Below are positions 52,637 to 63,459 of a DNA stretch of 64,000 nucleotides, piece by piece. A program made the translations under genes and the position numbers. The notes under the pieces are model-generated. The model was not told where the DNA came from. It ran no database searches and saw only the letters and a list, made by a program, of their open reading frames with translations. The stretch covers positions 4,650,001-4,714,000 of the forward strand of contig CATNEN010000007.1 in the NCBI GenBank assembly GCA_950097015.1, written 5' to 3'. Source of the stretch: Macrostomum hystrix (lineage: Eukaryota > Animalia > Platyhelminthes). The first letter of the stretch is position 1. The number at the start of each line of letters is the position of its first letter.

Positions 52637-55600
52637 CTAGGCAGTGGAGGGCTGCTCAAGCCGCAGGTGTCTGAGAATCAGCCGCCTCAGGCTCCTGTTT
52701 GGAATGAGCTGCTGCTGCAGCGGCTGACCGGTCATGGGGCTGAGCACTCGGCCTGTGGCAAACCAGGTCTCAATAGCCGACCGCTCATATGTATGACCGT
52801 CGGCAGCTATGACCGGATCGAGCATGACCTCCCGAGTCACCGGGCATATGAACTCCGCTGGCGGAACTGCGAAAGTTGCACGAGTTTTGGAAATTCCGAG
52901 AAAGTAAAGTGGCGGAGTAGGAAGGGGCGGAGTAGGAAGGGCGGAGTAGGAAGGGCGGAGTAGGAAGGGGCGGAGTAGGAAGGGACGGAGTAGGAAGGGG
53001 CGGAGTAGGAAGGGCGGAGTAGGAAGGGCGGAGTAGGAAGGGGCGGAGAAGGGGCAGAGTAGGAAGGGCGGAGAAGGGCGGAGAAGGGCGGAGTAGGAAG
53101 GGGCGGAGTAGGAAGGGGCGGAGTAGGAAGGGGCGGAGTAGGAAGGGCGGAGTAGGAAGGGCGGAGTAGGAAGGGCGGAGTAGGAAGGGCGGAGTAGGAA
53201 GGGCGGAGTAGGAAGGGGCGGAGAAGGGGTAGAGTAGGAAGGGCGGAGAAGGGCGGAGTAGGAAGGGCGGAGTAGGAAGGGCGGAGAAGGGCGGAGTAGG
53301 AAGGGCGGAGTAGGAAGGGCGGAGTAGGAAGGGCGGAGAATGAAGGGGCGGAGAAGGAAGGGGCGGAGAAAGAAGGGGCGGAGAAGGGTCGGAGTAGGAA
53401 GGGTGGAGAAGGAAGGGGCGGAGAAGGAAGGGGCGGAGAAGGGGCGGAGTAGAAAGGGCGGAGAAGGAAGGGGTGGAGAAAGGAAGGGGCGGAGTAGGAA
53501 GGGGCGGAGAAGGAAGGGGTGGAGTAGGAAGGGCGGAGAATGATGGGGCGGAGAAGGAAGGGGCGGAGAAGGAAGGGGCAGAGAAGGAAGGGACGGAGAA
53601 GGAAGGGCGGAGTAGGAAGGGGCGGAGAAGGAAGGGACGGAGAAGGAAGGGACGGAGAAGGAAGGGGCGGAGAAGGAAGGGACGGAGAAGGAAGGGACGG
53701 AGAAGGAAGGGGCGGAGAAGGAAGGGACGGAGAAGGAAGGGGCGGAGAAGGAAGGGACGGAGAAGGAAGGGGCGGAGAAGGAAGGGACGGAGAAGGAAGG
53801 GGCGGAGAAGGAAGGGACGGAGAAGGAAGGGGCGGAGAAGGAAGGGACGGAGAAGGAAGGGGCGGAGAAGGAAGGGACGGAGAAGGAAGGGGCGGAGAAG
53901 GAAGGGACGGAGAAGGAAGGGGCGGAGAAGGAAGGGACGGAGAAGGAAGGGGCGGAGAAGGAAGGGACGGAGAAGGAAGGGGTGGAGAAGGAGGGTTTTT
54001 AATGCATTTGCTTCGGCACGAAACACGAGTAAAATTTGTTTCCTCAAATTGGCCGGTTAGGAAAACTTTCAATTCCCAAATCCGCAGCCGCTCATGAATA
54101 ATTCAGGCGGCAGGCTGGTGAAAATGGGACTCAGCTAAGCTGTGTGGGAGCTCTGCTGCCCGTCTTGTGCGCATGGGCTCACAGAAACGCAAGGGAAAAG
54201 CAGGACAGAGTGGGTGTGGGGGTTGAAACACGCTCCTCGGCTGTGTTTAAAAGCAACAAAGTCCGCTGCCAGTGTCCGTGTCAATTTGGGAAAATTAACT
54301 CCACTAAAAGCGCCAACCGCGTCGGACTTGAAGACAAGTGCCCGAGACAAGACCATCACAGTAAATGAGAGCCTCACCTGCACGGCTTGGAGACAAGTGC
54401 CCGAGACAAGACCATCACAGTAAATGAGAGCCTCACCTGCACGGCTTGGAGCCACTGACTGCCGGCGCGAGGTGTCGCTTAGCAAGGCCACGGCGTCCAG
54501 AATCCTGCGACGGTCAGCCGGCTGATCTGGAAGTGCGGAGGGGATGGGATTAAAGGGCGGATCGGATGGGAATAGAGGGCGGTTGGCATTCGAATAGAGG
54601 GCGGATGGCATTCGAATGGAGGGCGGATGGGATTGGAACAGAGGGTGGATGGGATAAAAATGAGGGCGGATGGGATGGAATAGAGGGCGGATGGGATTGG
54701 AATAGAGGGCGGATGGGATAAAAATGAGGGCGGATGGGATGGAATAGAGGGCGGATGGGATTGGAATAGAGGGCGGATGGAATGGAATAGAGGGCGGATG
54801 GGGTTGGAATAGAGGGCGGATGGGATTGGAATAGAGGGCGCATGGGATAAAAATGAGGGCGGATGGGATGGAATAGAGGGCGGATGGGATTGGAATAGAG
54901 GGCGGATGGGATTGGAATAGAGGGCGGATGGGATTGGAATAGAGGGCGGATGGGATTGGAATAGAGGGCGGATGGGATTGGAATAGAGGGCGGATGGGAT
55001 TGGAATAGAGGGCGGATGGGATTGGAATAGAGGGCGGATGGGATTGGAATTTCCCTCTCAATTGGGGGATTTCAATCCCAAGGAAGGCCAGCTCATTTAG
55101 AGTTGGAGGAATTCGATAAAATCCAGGTTGGAAAAACCGCCAGTCCAGCTCAAGCTTTGAGAAGTTTGAGATGAAACCCTGGACCGCATGGTTCTCGCCA
55201 ATCCCAGAAAAATGGCCAATTTCTCGGTTTTTACAGCAAGCGAAAGAAACGCGAGCAGCCAGAGCTGGCTCCGGGGATAGTGTCGGATGCAGATGAGGAA
55301 AAATCCAACGAAAATTCTCCCCTTCCTTCGCTCCCTCAGTCCCCCTGCGGTGCGGCTGTCCCAGGGTTGGTAACAGGAGACCCGGTGCGCCGGGCCTTAG
55401 TGCTGTGAATTATTTAAACTGGAACGGCTGCATTGGCCTCCGTTTGAGACTAGACTCACAGCTGTTTTCGTTCTGTGAGTTGCGTGGGAGGAACCCAAGG
55501 CCTTGTACCATCGGCGGTGGGACAAATGATTCCGGAAGGCAGATGTGCAAAGTAACAATTGTTAAGGGATCTTGTAAACATGTGAATGGGAAAATGTCAC

Positions 55601-58600
55601 AGCATCACACAGTCACCAGCTGTCACAGCATCACACAGTCACCAGCTGTCACAGCATCACACAGTCACCAGCTGTCACAGCATCACGGAGCTTGTCCGAA
55701 GCTCTCACCGACACGGCTCGCACCGGCGGGACACAGCGCCTGTGAGGTATGAGTCAGACCAGGCCCACGGGCTAAGGTCTGCGATGCCTCACACCTGCAG
55801 TCGCTTTTTGAGCAGGCCTGGCAGGAAGGAGCCCTGTGCCTTCGGGTGCAGGAATCCCTCCACGCTGTCCCGTCAGCTGACCCATGGGTACACGTCCCGC
55901 GAGTGTTCAAGGCTGACCCTAGGGCTGCCGGACAGAATGGGCAACAGCGCTGGATGACCCATCCAGGGCCTCTGGCCAAACTGGGTACCTCTAGCCCCGG
56001 CTGGAGGGAAAGGTGTCACCCTCTGACCTTTACAGGGTATGCGGCCAGTCCGCAGCGTTCGTGCACCTGTGCGTGATCAGGTACCTCTGGCTACGGCTCT
56101 GAGGGAAAGGTGTCACCCTTCGACCTTAACAGGGTATGCGGCCAGTCCGCAGCGTTCGTGCACCTGTGCGTGATCAGGTACCTCTGGCTACGGCTCTGAG
56201 GGAAAGGTGTCACCCTTCGACCTTAACAGGGAATGCGGCCAGTCCGCAGCGTTCGTGCACCTGTGCGTGATCAGGTACCTCTGGCTACGGCTCTGAGGGA
56301 AAGGTGTCACCCTTCGACCTTAACAGGGTATGCGGCCAGCTCCGCAGGCCCCGGTTTCCGGCCATTTGGTGCCCTCTAATGTCCCCAGTGCATCCGTGCT
56401 GTTGGGCGTTTGCCGGACCTTGGTCCGCGCTTTGGCTGGGGAGTATTCCAGCCGCTAACGGTGTTTCACTCTCTCTGTTGCTCCCGGCTGGCTTGGGGTG
56501 TCGGCCAGTCGGGCTTTTCTCACTCGTTATCGAGCAGCCCCCCACCCGCTTTTCAGCCATGGCCTCGCCCATTTCTTCAATCGAAACCGAAAACTCGGCC
56601 GCTCCGGACGCTGCCACTGGCAGGTCCCACGTCCTCGGTGTAGCCGGTGGGTCTGAGAATCCCGCCACCGGAATCGTCGACCAAAATAAGCGCAACCCGA
56701 GCCGCAAACGCTCGGAGGAAGCGCGTGCTAGGCGCAACCAGAAGCGCAACGAACGCCGCCGCAATGCTGCGGCGGCTGCGACTGGTGGGCGCCCGACACC
56801 TGCACAGGAGGCGGGTGCGAAAAATGCGGCCGGGCCACCTGGATCCGCCGCCCCCACCGCCGCGCCGGCCATCACCATCTCCAAGGCCAGCACCGACGCC
56901 GACGGGAAGAGCGTGGAAGGCGCAGCAGGGCCTTCTGGAGCCGCCGCCCCCAGCGCCATCACGGCCACCACCACTCACAAGGCCGGCACGTCCAACGCCA
57001 GCAAGGCCAAGGAGACTTACGCCTCCAAAGCCAAGCGGGAGCCTGGCCAGCCGGCCATCATTGTGGTCGGCGAGGAACAGGACCTCTCGGACGAGCAGCT
57101 CAAGAGCATGCTCAAAACCATCGACGAGGGCCTCACGGACCTGGCACTGGCTGGGACACCAGTCAGCGTTGTCAGGTCTGAAGCGCAGGAGGGGGCTGTC
57201 CTCCTCTGGTGCAAATCGGCCGGGGATAGCCGTCTACTGCGCGATCGGATCAAAGATTTCAAGTGGAGCACCGATGTCGGAAGACTGAGGTGCACCACCG
57301 AGTCTGAGCGTCCACGGACCCGACGCCATCGCGTCTGGGTCCCCGACGCCTGCTCAATCCGGTCCGGGGACCAACTTCGGCAGCTGCTGCTGAAGATGAA
57401 CCCGGACCTCCCAGCCTCCGGGCTGATCTGCCACGAGACCGTCCGCAAAGGAGCGGAGGGTTTCACGGCGATCTACGGCTTCTCCGAAGCCTGGTCCAAA
57501 AGGATCCCTCACAAGAGCGTTATCAAACCGGGACTCTACCCGCTGACCATCCTGGATTGTCAGGAGAGGAAGGCCGGGGAGGGACCGGAAAACAAGCGGA
57601 CCGCTCCTGGCCCTGGGGCGAAAGCTCCGCCAGCTAAGCGGCATGCGACGTCCGTAGACCCCCGCCCTGGCAAAAATATCCGCGTCGCCGAATCCGGCCC
57701 CCGAGATCGTAGACCAGCCCGCAACAACCGCAAATCGGGCCTGGTCTTGCGGGCGCTCAGCGAAGCCCGGGCGCTCAAAGAGCACCTGGAGCGCTCCCGC
57801 GCTGCAAAAGCGCAAACCTCCTCCCCCCCTAGCCAGCCGCAGAGTGCCGGGACCCACGGAGCGGTGGCCACCGACTGGTCTGAGGATCTCCCTCACCGGA
57901 AGGAGGCCGCCATCCACACGGACCCGACCCCCGAGAGCGAGGCGTCGAGTGATGGCAGCGACTGCACCGTTGTTGGGTGGAGCGGCCGGGACACGCAGCG
58001 GTCAGAGCAGCAGCTCTCCGCAGCGATTCCCGCCGTTCCCTCCACAGCGGATGCGGGCGCGCCGCTACTCATGGAGGTCTGCAGCCCGACCCCGTCTGAG
58101 GAGGACGAGCTGCTCAAGGAGTCTCCCGCTGGACCATGATCGGCCAGACTGGGACTACCTGCCTGCAGGTCAACCTGCAACACTGCATAGCTGCATCCGT
58201 CAATCTGATGCGCTATGTCGAGCTCAACACGCCGGGTCTCATCCTCGTCCAGGAGCCGTGGACTCATAAAGGTAAGCCTCAAAATGTACCCAATGGGTAT
58301 CACTGCTTCTACAACAGCCGTCACCGGGAGAACCAAAATCCCAGGGCGTGCATCCTCGTGAGAGACTCCCTCAACGCCTGGTACAGACCCGACCTTTCTG
58401 ATCGGGACACCTGTGTCATCCAGACGGAGAGCATCCTCCCAGGCAAAACCGTCTTAATCGCCTCGGTTTATTTACCGGGCGACAGGCCGGCAGTCCCTGA
58501 GGAGCTGATCTCCCTGACTGAAACCTGCGCTACCAAAAACTATGAGCTCATGGTGGCTGGCGATATAAACGCCCACCACACCCACTGGGGGAGCTCTGAC

Positions 58601-61600
58601 ATTAACTCGAGAGGCGAGGACCTCCTTGCCTACATCCTAACCACGCCTCTGGAGTTCTGCAACACAGGGAGCACCCCGACATTTGACAATGGACGATGGT
58701 CTGAGGTCATCGACGCCACTCTAGCCACACCTGGGCTCTACCAGAGCCTTAGGGAGTGGCAGGTTCTGCCGGAGACCTCCCTCTCCGATCACAAATACAT
58801 CTCTTTCCAACTGGCGGGTGCACGCTGCACTAACCAGATCACTTGGAAAAGGAACGCTAGGAATACCGATTGGGAAGCCTTCAGGTATAGCCTCGAAGGA
58901 ACCCAACGGAACCTCAGCCCCCCCGCCAACACCTGCGATGAAGCGGATGAGCTAGCTGAGTTTCTCACCAACTCGCTGACCACCGCCTTCGAGGCCTCCT
59001 GCCCCCTCAAAGCTTACAGAGGCAAAACTTCGGCCCCATGGTGGAATCCGCAGCTCGGCGAGCTCCGTCGAACGGCGAAGCGGCTGCACCGCAGGGCCAC
59101 GAAGACCAAAAACCCGGCTGATCAGGCTGCGTATCTCGAAGCCATCCATAGCTTCAAGAAGGAAGTCAGAAACGCCAAAAACAGCAAGTGGCGGCAATAC
59201 TGTGAGGAGCTTGAGGGCACTCGCCCCACCTCCAGAATTGTCAAAGCCCTCACGCTGGACAAAATGTCCAAGCTTTCGACGGTGAGGAAGGCCGATGGCC
59301 GACCCACCGAGAACCCTGGGGAAACGCTCGACACTATGCTCACAGCCTTTTTCCCCAGCGTGCCAGCAGGGACAGACCCCCCGGATCACACCGAGGGAGG
59401 TCATATCCTTGCGACGTCCATCATTACTGAAGACCGGGTTACCAAGGCAGCCCAGTCTTTCAAACCCTTCAAATCCCCGGGGCCGGACGGCATTATACCA
59501 GCCTTCATCCGCGAGGCGGTAAAATGCCATGGCTTCCTCACTAATCTTTGCAAGCTCCTTAAGGCTTGCATTGTGCTTGGGTATGTTCCGAAGGCATGGA
59601 CCGAGGCGAGGGTGGTTTTTATCCCCAAGCCAGGCCGCCCGGACTACCATTCCATTAAATCGTTTCGGCCAATTAGCCTAACCTCCACCATGGTCAAACT
59701 GATGGAGAGATTGGTGCTCTGGTGCCTCCTCTCTGTGGAGCTGAAAAATATGCCACTAAGCGGCAATCAACACGCCTTTCGGTCGGGACGTTCCACCGAA
59801 AGCGCTCTCCACGCTCTGGTGGACGCTCTGGAAAAGGCCGTCCTCGGGAACGGCTTTGCCCTGAGCATCTTCCTGGATATTGACGGGGCCTTCGACAACG
59901 TTCTCTTCGAGGCGTTTGACAGGGCCCTACGTATGCGGCACACGCATTCGCATCTTAGGAGGTGGATCATGTACATGGTCCGCCACCGCACTGCTACGGC
60001 ACACCTTCTTGGACACCAGCGGACGGTCACTGTCTGCAAAGGTTGCCCACAAGGCGGCGTCCTCTCACCAGTTCTCTGGAACATGGTTATCGACGAGCTC
60101 TTACGAGACTCTCAGCCAGACCCCATCCTAAAGGTCGGCTATGCGGATGATGTTACGGCAGTGGCATCTGGCCCGGTACCAGAGGCCCTCCGAGACCTTC
60201 TGCAAAACTTTATCAACAACGCCGAAAGATGGGCAACTCGCTGCGGTCTGAAGCTCTCCGAGTCTAAGACAGCGGCGATCATGTTCACCAGCAAAAACAA
60301 ATGGCATATTCGCCCCCTGCAGCTTTATGGAAAGGACATCACCTTCCAGAAGCAAACTAAATGCCTGGGCATAACGCTCGATCACAGGCTCAGCTGGACT
60401 CCTCATGTCCATGCCAAAGCCAAAAAGGCCTTTGCGATCCTGGCGCAGCTGCGCAGGGCGGTGGGCAACACGTGGGGTCTCACCCCCAAACGTCTATGGT
60501 GGATCTACACTGCTATGGTCAGGCCGGCTGTCTCGTACGCCGGACTGATCTGGGCTAGTGCCCTGCAGCTTAAGACCTGCCATGAGACTCTTCGGAGAGT
60601 GCAAGGTCGCGCATGTCGAACGATCATGAGCGCCCCGCCATCCGCCCCCTTCGATGGCCTCAACGCCTTCTTGAACATCCTCCCGCTCGATATCTTTATC
60701 CGCGGGGAGGCGGCAAAAACCGCCCGGCGTCTCGTTGATGCCGGTGTGCGCTTCGTCCCCCAACGAGCGGCAGCGAAGCGAAAGCTCCTGCCGCACACGG
60801 ACCTTTGCCTGAGAGACTTGGGTGCGAGCAACGGAATCAATGTCCTTACGGACGGTGAACCGTGCTCGCTCAACCTCCTTCAGCGCTTTAAGGTTCTCAT
60901 CCCCACCAGGGACCAAGTTAGCGACCACTGGAACACCCAGGAGGTCCACTGCTACACGGACGGATCCATGAAGGATGGCTCCGCTGGCTTCGGGGTCTGT
61001 ATCCTTATCAACGGACGTGTTGTCGCCACACACGCCCAACACACTGGAAAATCCTCGAGCGTTTTCCAGAACGAGGTCCTGGCCATCAGCTCCTGCGCTG
61101 CGGAGTTGAATGAGAAAAACATCTCAGGCAGGACTATCATCTTTCACTCGGACAGTCAGGCTGCTCTGCAAGCCCTCTGTCACACCACCACAACCTCCCG
61201 GACAGTCTCCGACTGTGTCCGGCAGCTCAATAACCTGGCCGGTAAGAATACCGTCAGACTTCAGTGGATACCAGGGCACGCCGGTTTCCCTGGTAACGAG
61301 CTTGCTGACCACCTGGCCAAGCAGGGAGGAGCCAGCTCTGCGCCGGGCCCCTCCCCCCCGGCTCCGATTCCGAGCACCGTCATTTATCGTCAGATTAATG
61401 ATTGGACTGCCAACCTCCATCTTACCCGGTGGAGAAGCACCACTAACTGCCGCCAATCCAAAGCGGCAGTTCCAGTGCCATCCGCTCGGCTCCGGAAGGT
61501 CCTTCTGAACCAGACCCGGAAGGACATCCGGGCCCTCACCATGACCCTCACGGGCCATGGCTGCTACGCCAGACACTGTTTCCTCCGTGGAGACCTCCGG

Positions 61601-63459
61601 AGTGAGCTGTGCCCTTTCTGCAACCTTGAGGACGAGGATGCCCTGCACTTCGTCTGCCACTGCCCTTTCTTCACCAGAGAGAGGCTTAATCACCTCGGAC
61701 CAAACCCATCCATGGACGATGTTTGCAGATCCGAGAACATCCCGCGGCTCGTCCGGTTCCTAAGGGCTACCAGACGAGCCTCTTTCTTCCCCAGCGAGGA
61801 ACAAGCTGCAGGAAGGACCGAACACGGACCTCCCTGACTGGCCCCGCGCCATCGGCCGATTGCGGGTCTTTCAGGGATTAGCGGAATGGGCGACTCCCGC
61901 CTCCCCGCTGCGTCCGTCGGACCGCCCTGCAGATAAGTCAAGTCAAGTCTCACCGACACGCAGTCGATCGCGCAACCGCCGATCGGTCAGGGCGAGCAGC
62001 GCCGGTCCGTCAACGCCGCGCCGACGGAAGGCTGCAGCATGCCCGCCCAGCCCCAGACTGTCCAGCAGTTGCGTCACCTCGTCCATCGTCCAGGAGCTCA
62101 TCGGGGTCGACGAGGTTATCGTCGGCGTCGGTGGCATCGGGGGCGTCGGGGGCGTCGGCGTTTCTGGCGGTGGCGATGGCTCAGGCGGCGCTGGCAGAGT
62201 CTCGAAGCGCATCGTTGGCAGCGGCGTTGTCGGATCTGAGTCGGCAACATCGGGAGGTGGTTCAACTTCGGCTACGTCGGCGGAGCAGCCGTCGCAGCTG
62301 TCGCAACAGCTACTACTGCAGCAACAGCAGCAGCAGCAGGAGCCTGAGCAGGAGCAGAAGCTGCAGCTGTCGGATGCAGCGTCATTTACATTTTCTGCAT
62401 GTGTTGGAGGCGATGAGCGCAAATCATAACAGCAATGACCAAAATGAGAACCCTGAGCACACTCTCAGGGTACACGTTTAATCATATTGATTATCGACCA
62501 GGTGACAACTCGCCTAGATTCGCCCCGGAGTCGGCCAGCAGATCCGCCTGCCGGTTCTGGTCCTCGTCCTCGATGGCGAGGTCCCAGACTCGAACCAGCC
62601 GGTCGTTGGAGCCGCTGGCGAGTCGGCGACCGTCTGGAGAGAAGCAGCAGCTGGTCACATAGCTGCAATGGCGGGCCGATGGTAGATGCGAGATTCAACG
62701 GAATTGAATAAATGAAGATTTGTGAAATTTTGAATCTGCACCTGCAATAGATTCTCTAGGGGAGACACGGGACGAACAGGGAGAGATGGGACACGGGAGA
62801 GATGAGACAGGGAGAGATGAGACAGGGGAGAGATGAGACAGGGGAGGGATGAGACAGGGGAGAGATGAGACAGGGAGAGAGATGAGACAGGGGAGAGATG
62901 AGACAGGGAGAGAGATGAGACAGGGAGAGATGAGACAGGGAGAGAGATGAGACAGGGAGAGAGATGAGACAGGGAGAGAGATGAGACAGGGGAATATTCA
63001 GATTATGAGTTCACAAAGCCATCACTTTCTGTTCAAGTGTCTGCATAAATCACGGAGCAGTGTTCTGACCGTGCGTGAGCCTCCACAACGTGCAGAGAAG
63101 ATGCTGTTTCCTGGAAAGGTTGGGAAAGGTTCTTATTTAACTTTAATGCGCGGATGCACTTTTTGGTTTAAACCGAGAGCCTGACGGACGGGATCTCGCG
63201 AGACTCCGCTTACCGGCTTCCAGATCCTCACGGTGTGATCCCCGGAACTGGGCCGGGATGGGAGAGAAAAATTTTGGCAGCGTGAGTCAGTCAGTCAGGT
63301 GTGTGAAAGAGAAAATTGCTGCCTGGTCTTAACAATGGCCGGACTGGGCGACTCACCAGGAAATGAGCAGCTTCCCATTTGGGGAGAAGTGAACCGCCAT
63401 CACCGCCCGGCTGTGGCCCTTCAGTGAGAACAGCAGACTCAGGCTGCCATGCTGCTTTC
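52637..63459 (-). CDS. WDSUB1: WD repeat, SAM and U-box domain protein, 3' part (gene continues past the window end)
   Basis: Exons 63357-63459, 63214-63247, 63070-63110, 62514-62662, 61954-62394, 54437-54526 and 52637-52866 have consistent phases. They encode WD40 repeats ([32 protein letters not shown]; [28 protein letters not shown]), a SAM domain ([15 protein letters not shown]...[10 protein letters not shown]) and a U-box ([33 protein letters not shown]...SPMT...LIPNRSL). Confidence 0.9.
52908..53995. repeat. G-rich 15-18-bp minisatellite in the last WDSUB1 intron
   Basis: ggcggagtaggaaggg units grade into ggcggagaaggaaggg and gacggagaaggaaggg. Confidence 0.93.
54545..55050. repeat. ~22-bp G-rich minisatellite in WDSUB1 intron
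   Basis: About 22 copies of gggattggaatagagggcggat. Confidence 0.92.
55596..55687. repeat. 26-bp tandem repeat x3.5
   Basis: gtcacagcatcacacagtcaccagct, in host intron sequence next to the retrotransposon target site. Confidence 0.88.
56004..56345 (+). repeat. 97-bp tandem monomers in the retrotransposon 5' UTR
   Basis: Units start at 56004, 56101, 56198 and 56295 (the last is partial). Confidence 0.93.
56559..58139 (+). CDS. Retrotransposon ORF1 (526 aa)
   Basis: First plausible ATG (GCCATGG) in the 56304-58139 frame. It has a basic low-complexity N-terminus and a central region reminiscent of the DUF4780-type ORF1 of LOA-like elements (inference). No CCHC knuckle seen. The stop overlaps the ORF2 start (ATGA). 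Confidence 0.8.
   Translation: MASPISSIETENSAAPDAATGRSHVLGVAGGSENPATGIVDQNKRNPSRKRSEEARARRNQKRNERRRNAAAAATGGRPTPAQEAGAKNAAGPPGSAAPTAAPAITISKASTDADGKSVEGAAGPSGAAAPSAITATTTHKAGTSNASKAKETYASKAKREPGQPAIIVVGEEQDLSDEQLKSMLKTIDEGLTDLALAGTPVSVVRSEAQEGAVLLWCKSAGDSRLLRDRIKDFKWSTDVGRLRCTTESERPRTRRHRVWVPDACSIRSGDQLRQLLLKMNPDLPASGLICHETVRKGAEGFTAIYGFSEAWSKRIPHKSVIKPGLYPLTILDCQERKAGEGPENKRTAPGPGAKAPPAKRHATSVDPRPGKNIRVAESGPRDRRPARNNRKSGLVLRALSEARALKEHLERSRAAKAQTSSPPSQPQSAGTHGAVATDWSEDLPHRKEAAIHTDPTPESEASSDGSDCTVVGWSGRDTQRSEQQLSAAIPAVPSTADAGAPLLMEVCSPTPSEEDELLKESPAGP
58136..61837 (+). CDS. Retrotransposon ORF2 (1233 aa): AP endonuclease, reverse transcriptase, RNase H, CCHC finger
   Basis: APE motifs QEPW, GDINAHH and SDH; RT motifs [32 protein letters not shown] and YADD; RNase H motifs YTDGS, NEVLAI, SDSQAAL and WIPGH...GNELAD; C-terminal CPFC...HFVCHC. 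No stops or frameshifts. Confidence 0.97.
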   Translation: MIGQTGTTCLQVNLQHCIAASVNLMRYVELNTPGLILVQEPWTHKGKPQNVPNGYHCFYNSRHRENQNPRACILVRDSLNAWYRPDLSDRDTCVIQTESILPGKTVLIASVYLPGDRPAVPEELISLTETCATKNYELMVAGDINAHHTHWGSSDINSRGEDLLAYILTTPLEFCNTGSTPTFDNGRWSEVIDATLATPGLYQSLREWQVLPETSLSDHKYISFQLAGARCTNQITWKRNARNTDWEAFRYSLEGTQRNLSPPANTCDEADELAEFLTNSLTTAFEASCPLKAYRGKTSAPWWNPQLGELRRTAKRLHRRATKTKNPADQAAYLEAIHSFKKEVRNAKNSKWRQYCEELEGTRPTSRIVKALTLDKMSKLSTVRKADGRPTENPGETLDTMLTAFFPSVPAGTDPPDHTEGGHILATSIITEDRVTKAAQSFKPFKSPGPDGIIPAFIREAVKCHGFLTNLCKLLKACIVLGYVPKAWTEARVVFIPKPGRPDYHSIKSFRPISLTSTMVKLMERLVLWCLLSVELKNMPLSGNQHAFRSGRSTESALHALVDALEKAVLGNGFALSIFLDIDGAFDNVLFEAFDRALRMRHTHSHLRRWIMYMVRHRTATAHLLGHQRTVTVCKGCPQGGVLSPVLWNMVIDELLRDSQPDPILKVGYADDVTAVASGPVPEALRDLLQNFINNAERWATRCGLKLSESKTAAIMFTSKNKWHIRPLQLYGKDITFQKQTKCLGITLDHRLSWTPHVHAKAKKAFAILAQLRRAVGNTWGLTPKRLWWIYTAMVRPAVSYAGLIWASALQLKTCHETLRRVQGRACRTIMSAPPSAPFDGLNAFLNILPLDIFIRGEAAKTARRLVDAGVRFVPQRAAAKRKLLPHTDLCLRDLGASNGINVLTDGEPCSLNLLQRFKVLIPTRDQVSDHWNTQEVHCYTDGSMKDGSAGFGVCILINGRVVATHAQHTGKSSSVFQNEVLAISSCAAELNEKNISGRTIIFHSDSQAALQALCHTTTTSRTVSDCVRQLNNLAGKNTVRLQWIPGHAGFPGNELADHLAKQGGASSAPGPSPPAPIPSTVIYRQINDWTANLHLTRWRSTTNCRQSKAAVPVPSARLRKVLLNQTRKDIRALTMTLTGHGCYARHCFLRGDLRSELCPFCNLEDEDALHFVCHCPFFTRERLNHLGPNPSMDDVCRSENIPRLVRFLRATRRASFFPSEEQAAGRTEHGPP
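62780..62993. repeat. 15-17-bp minisatellite in WDSUB1 intron
   Basis: About 13 copies of gagatgagacaggg(a/g) variants. Confidence 0.9.

Follow-up and report, generated by a model that had tools for sequence, protein, structure and literature searches.

A full-length LINE whose target-site duplication spans a splice donor in a WDSUB1-type gene of Macrostomum hystrix, probably placed there by coincidence

The window, a stretch of 64,000 nucleotides of Macrostomum hystrix DNA, contains a full-length LINE inserted into a gene of the WDSUB1 type, with a target-site duplication that covers the end of the SAM-coding exon and the beginning of the following intron (Table 1). This arrangement is very probably the result of an ordinary insertion that happened very recently, by an active LINE without sequence specificity, and the overlap with the splice donor would accordingly be coincidental and not a property of the endonuclease.

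Table 1. Features of the LINE, its target-site duplication and the host gene (window positions).
Feature	Position	Strand	Remarks
Last coding exon, U-box	52637..52866	-	Pfam U-box E = 1.2e-17; stop codon 52639-52637
Next exon, 90 nt, end of SAM domain	54437..54526	-	Acceptor AG 54528-54527, following donor GT 54436-54435
Target-site duplication, intron-distal copy	55703..55715	.	Minus-strand decoy of exon end and donor, GT at 55708-55707
Full-length LINE, 6,232 bp	55716..61947	+	Antisense to host gene; ends fixed by family matches and family tail
LINE 5' UTR	55716..56555	+	Three overlapping 142-nt copies, 97-bp spacing (56004-56339)
ORF1	56556..58139	+	527 aa from first ATG, open, weak DUF4780-like match
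ORF2	58136..61837	+	1,233 aa, open; APE endonuclease, reverse transcriptase, RNase H, C-terminal Cys/His motif
LINE 3' UTR	61838..61947	+	Closes with tail AGATAAGTCAAGTCAAG
Target-site duplication, exon-adjacent copy	61948..61960	.	Minus strand: 61960-61954 last 7 exon bases, 61953-61948 donor GTGAGA
SAM-coding exon, 3' part	61954..62104	-	Pfam SAM_1 E = 2e-07; open frame extends to 62422
Upstream open frame, WD40 repeat	62491..62658	-	Pfam WD40 E = 5.2e-09; matches P0008

An exact 13-bp direct repeat, TCTCACCGACACG, is located at 55703-55715 and again at 61948-61960, directly flanking the LINE at 55716-61947, and on the minus strand it reads CGTGTCG/GTGAGA (the slash marks the exon-intron boundary here and below), that is, 7 exon bases and 6 intron bases. 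The repeat adjoins LINE ends that were set independently, from other copies of the family. The duplication is real, since the identity of 13 bases at fixed positions is expected by chance with a probability of about 4^-13 = 1.5e-8 and the length is the norm for the family, falling within the range of 8-13 bp (mostly 11-13 bp) of 20 other copies. A preliminary description of the locus had reported this 13-bp repeat on both sides of an intact antisense LINE and had read it as the last 7 nucleotides of the exon plus the first 6 of the intron; the two copies are indeed exact, and the reading agrees with an exon end at 61954. The genome searched was the 220-Mb assembly of 42 contigs, in which both insertion flanks are single-copy, low-complexity matches aside, and in which no empty allele or paralogue was found with the two flanks as queries. 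A scan of the junction for promoters and terminators of the prokaryotic type, which is irrelevant to flatworm DNA, returned nothing. A 26-bp tandem repeat (window 55595-55686) is 17 nt away from the LINE copy.

The host gene encodes WD40, then SAM and then a C-terminal U-box in this order on one strand, as in WDSUB1, and the label WDSUB1-type rests on this domain order, the protein compared being a fragmentary 'SAM domain-containing protein' of Macrostomum lignano (P0008, UniRef100_A0A1I8FJ68), the nearest WDSUB1-like protein. Pfam searches were run exon by exon, each exon separately. The SAM_1 match spans profile positions 2-45 of 64 and halts at the exon end at 61954, and when the frame is continued past the donor, a stop closes it 2 codons further on at present and 8 codons further on in the sequence deduced for the empty site. 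A stop so soon after the donor even before the insertion indicates that the intron is older than the LINE. The next exon, 54526-54437, ends just before GTGAGG, and both splice junctions are in phase 1 so that the frame is kept. Searched alone, this exon of 29 aa gave no Pfam match, which is unsurprising for a domain remnant of 19 residues, and the exon was therefore compared pairwise with P0008. The M. lignano protein aligns to the SAM exon over residues 246-295 with 66% identity, and its residues 299-311 align to exon 54526-54437 by BLASTP with an offset that puts the first residue of the exon at 297; the split codon fills residue 296, and there is therefore no gap across the junction. An exon end at 61954 and a junction 61954/54526 are thus supported at the sequence level by the split SAM match, the stops past the donor, the acceptor with the frame, and the gap-free collinearity with P0008. 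No transcript-derived protein from the same species was found when the SAM-exon frame was searched against 1.84 billion representative proteins. The frame upstream of the SAM domain (62105-62422) encodes about 100 aa of low complexity rich in Cys, Ser and Pro that the M. lignano homologue does not have, and the introns of the gene (window 52785-55061, minus strand) contain kilobase arrays of short repeats.

The target before insertion is deduced as CGTGTCG/GTGAGAGCTTCGG, present once, and the intron has grown from about 1,182 to 7,427 nt through the LINE and the second 13-bp copy. The context of the donor is now GTCG/GTGAGAGA and was formerly GTCG/GTGAGAGC, identical from position -3 to +7. 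Target-primed reverse transcription begins with a nick in the strand that is complementary to the 3' end of the element, and the 3'-OH of that strand primes the cDNA. Following this standard model, the endonuclease should have nicked the sense strand of the gene after GTGAGA, between intron positions +6 and +7, and the freed 3' end of the sense strand would have primed cDNA synthesis on the LINE tail. A second nick would have followed at a distance of 13 bp, opposite exon position -7, with the second copy of the 13 bp arising by fill-in. The landing place would thus be the first bases of an existing intron of about 1.18 kb in a WD40-SAM-U-box gene. Since the exon and its donor lie upstream of the first nick and were not detached, the 5' splice site on the exon side is the original one. 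The preliminary description held that the duplication had rebuilt a perfect donor, and this goes too far: an intact donor does stand beside the exon, but under target-primed reverse transcription it is the original, never separated from it. The event is equivalent to an intronic insertion of the LINE and 13 bp between +6 and +7, and luck is confined to the position of the nick, as a nick a few bases nearer the exon would have truncated the donor. Mammalian L1 elements inserted in introns near splice sites are comparable, with an antisense element and an untouched sequence upstream of the duplication in both cases; in the window LINE the first nick is 6 nt from the exon end and the duplication spans the junction, a difference in position and not in mechanism. 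The locus is a textbook case of a target-site duplication that is unable to destroy the sequence upstream of the priming nick.

The 5' end of the LINE is located at 55716, which is query base 1 and the point where each of the 40 scored 5'-end matches in the genome starts, and the 3' end is at 61947, where the family tail ...AGATAAGTC(AAGTC)nAAG closes. ORF1 was examined for domains and has no zinc knuckle, and the start of ORF2 overlaps the stop of ORF1 by ATGA. In ORF2 a domain search identified Exo_endo_phos_2 (4.4e-21, residues 107-222), RVT_1 (2.1e-31, residues 496-747) and, downstream of the reverse transcriptase, RNase_H (1.8e-13, residues 935-1064). An N-terminal apurinic-like endonuclease followed by a reverse transcriptase characterizes the APE-type non-LTR retrotransposons, and an RNase H downstream of the reverse transcriptase places the element with the RNase H-bearing I-like LINE group. 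The family has no LTRs, its copies are truncated to different extents at the 5' end and share a defined 3' end, and its target-site duplications are 8-13 bp long, as in LINEs generally. The classification was based on the domain order of ORF2 together with the nearest Atlas clusters, which have the same three domains with scores of 0.98-0.99, and on PDB neighbours, where the best solved endonuclease relatives are TRAS1 (E = 7.5e-14) and R1Bm. The dispersed APE-type LINEs of the I / Jockey / R1 assemblage share with the window LINE the APE, RT and RNase H of ORF2; in both, the two ORFs overlap, the duplications are short and many copies are truncated at the 5' end. Elements with these three domains are often automatically named 'mobile element jockey'. 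The window LINE has as its tail a short repeat of the AAGTC type closed by AAG, whereas the assemblage has poly(A) or (TAA)n, and the tightly held duplication length of 11-13 bp is also unlike that of the assemblage. ORF1 is DUF4780-like, as in arthropod clusters with that domain. The LINE family is a conventional one that is probably undescribed.

In the assembly the family is represented by at least 589 3'-end candidates and at least 212 5'-end candidates, and an AAGTC-type tail ending in AAG is common to all family 3' ends. The family is young, with 99.3-99.5% identity between the window copy and most of the other 3' 2-kb regions. When compared to 22 other copies, the window copy shows 2 private differences in 1,960 aligned nt. 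So few private differences indicate that the window insertion is very recent, and the intact neighbouring exons are therefore uninformative on selection; likewise, the survival of a copy this young says nothing about spliceability. Both ends were paired for 20 full-length copies, 12 of the same family and 8 of a sister family. The same-family duplications are 8-13 bp long, mostly 12-13 bp, and unrelated in sequence; they include GGGGGATCATCAT, TCACTACTTGTTC, AGCTAGCTACCC, GAGGCATCAAAA, ATATAAATAACGA and TTGAGTTGGATA, with no common motif, and the sister-family duplications of 11-13 bp are likewise unrelated.

The preliminary description had proposed that the insertion may reflect an APE endonuclease with a preference for 5' splice sites in the antisense orientation, so that intron starts would serve as dispersed safe harbours, and three circumstances speak for it: the duplication of the window copy contains G/GTGAGA, the closest solved endonucleases, TRAS1 and R1Bm, belong to the sequence-specific R1 clade, and the R1 (TRAS1, R1Bm) and Tx1 lineages of APE elements are target-specific (PMC4640811). 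The R1 clade (R1Bm, TRAS1) and the Tx1 clade (Keno and others) have the endonuclease fold family of the window LINE, but each of these elements is confined to a single target sequence, located in multicopy genes or in repeats, whereas the family of the window LINE occupies 64 unrelated sites. These sites were gathered by a pattern search for 3' junctions anchored on the exact last 18 unique bases of the LINE, which returned 69 junctions, 64 of them independent after 5 rows from segmental duplicates had been dropped; with an exact 18-nt anchor the older copies are under-sampled. The first 13 flank bases were read at each junction, where an antisense GTRAG appears as CTYAC on the element strand, and the nearness of the other copies to exon ends was judged by motif alone. 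An antisense GTRAG is present in the window copy only (1/64) and in 0/63 of the others; the sense orientation of the motif is found in 3 of the 64 junctions. Distal flanks, used to estimate the background, have the motif in about 1.6% of their 16-nt windows, which predicts about one match among 64 junctions, and the lone match is therefore at the chance level. The enrichment of G/GTRAG among the duplications, which the preliminary description had suggested should be looked for, is consequently absent, the one antisense match being the copy through which the family was ascertained. When this copy is left out, the count is 0/63, and with 95% confidence at most about 4.6% of insertions would have the motif.

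The targets vary in composition between AT-rich DNA and GC-rich minisatellites, and no motif is common to the 20 mapped duplications. Neither the 64 3' flanks nor the 20 duplications show the shared target of an R1- or Tx1-type LINE, and a preference of the endonuclease for 5' splice sites is refuted at the family level; it is accordingly considered very improbable as an explanation of the locus. The base preceding the duplication is mostly T or G (16/19, by eye), and a nick preference, if there is any, should therefore be weak and unrelated to donors. A weak bias that would send less than about 5% of insertions to sequences resembling 5' splice sites or to intron starts would be compatible with these counts and is considered very improbable; if it did exist, donor-spanning duplications should recur above chance and would provide tolerated landing sites in a gene-dense flatworm genome. 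Another kind of association with donors is known from the LINEs of spliced-leader genes (NeSL, SLACS, CRE), whose target RNA gene bears a (trans-)splice donor. NeSL, SLACS and CRE have a restriction-like endonuclease and a single multicopy gene as target, and the window LINE has nothing comparable. The other reading in the preliminary description, that of one lucky survivor, is supported by the absence of an antisense GTRAG from the 63 other junctions together with a single match at the level of chance. The idea of splice donors as safe harbours for a LINE is thus without support, and the importance of the locus beyond annotation is small.

With an ordinary insertion as the preferred reading, it is plausible that the gene with the LINE can still be spliced, and correct splicing is predicted from the donor, which is unchanged from -3 to +7. 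The same anatomy would also be compatible with a harmful insertion, where the six-fold longer intron, the antisense LINE sequence and the decoy donor reduce or misdirect splicing and where youth, drift or inbreeding explain the persistence of the allele. Two private differences in 1,960 nt would leave little time for selection, the intron is indeed lengthened to the extent given above, and the intron-distal duplication is a full decoy donor with an AG (55741-55740) that follows pyrimidines 31 nt upstream of it on the minus strand, so that a frame-shifting cryptic exon of 31 nt is conceivable. However, besides the unchanged donor, the acceptor is intact, as are the downstream exons, which keep the frame, and antisense intronic LINEs are usually tolerated, and a harmful effect is therefore regarded as unlikely, though it deserves more weight than targeting. 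An artefact, in which the assembly has misplaced a LINE copy into the gene, might be suspected from the hundreds of near-identical copies of the family, which are able to mislead assemblers, but a misjoin would create no target-site duplication, and here 13 bp of a flank that is single-copy in the genome are precisely duplicated at exactly the two ends of the family, leaving this possibility close to nil. The locus documents a LINE family of a Macrostomum genome that is active, has a high copy number and makes a constant duplication of about 13 bp. The insertion itself could serve as a polymorphic marker and is possibly a splicing-affecting allele of the WDSUB1-type gene.

The sister LINE family (L061-L068, e.g. 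L063:301-6675) also has an AAGTC-type tail and a 13-bp duplication, and its ORF2 is 63% identical to that of the window LINE at the protein level. The first approximately 635 nt of the 5' UTR (window 55716-56350), the repeats spaced by 97 bp included, show about 95% nucleotide identity between the two families, and it looks, from these identity values, as if a promoter/UTR module has recently been swapped between them. Two full-length copies (L037/L002 and L034/L009) have extra bases between the duplication and the first base of the element, a run of C in one copy and about 26 nt of unrelated sequence in the other. Such filler at 5' junctions is typical of end joining or template switching. 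Exactly the same flanks recur around LINE copies at C39:15762849, 16122962, 16137729 and 16158501, at C38:22400333/22442541 and at C15:1123062/1265540, and, to judge from these flanks, the segments containing the LINE were duplicated after insertion. Twelve of 30 sampled insertions are located within 40 nt of a minisatellite with a period of at least 7 (L003, L005, L010, L012, L015, L019, L021, L023, L024, L027, L028 and L030), and minisatellite coverage is about 19-21% both in the window and in the distal flanks; the proximity could be due to a slight regional preference or simply to a genome very rich in minisatellites.
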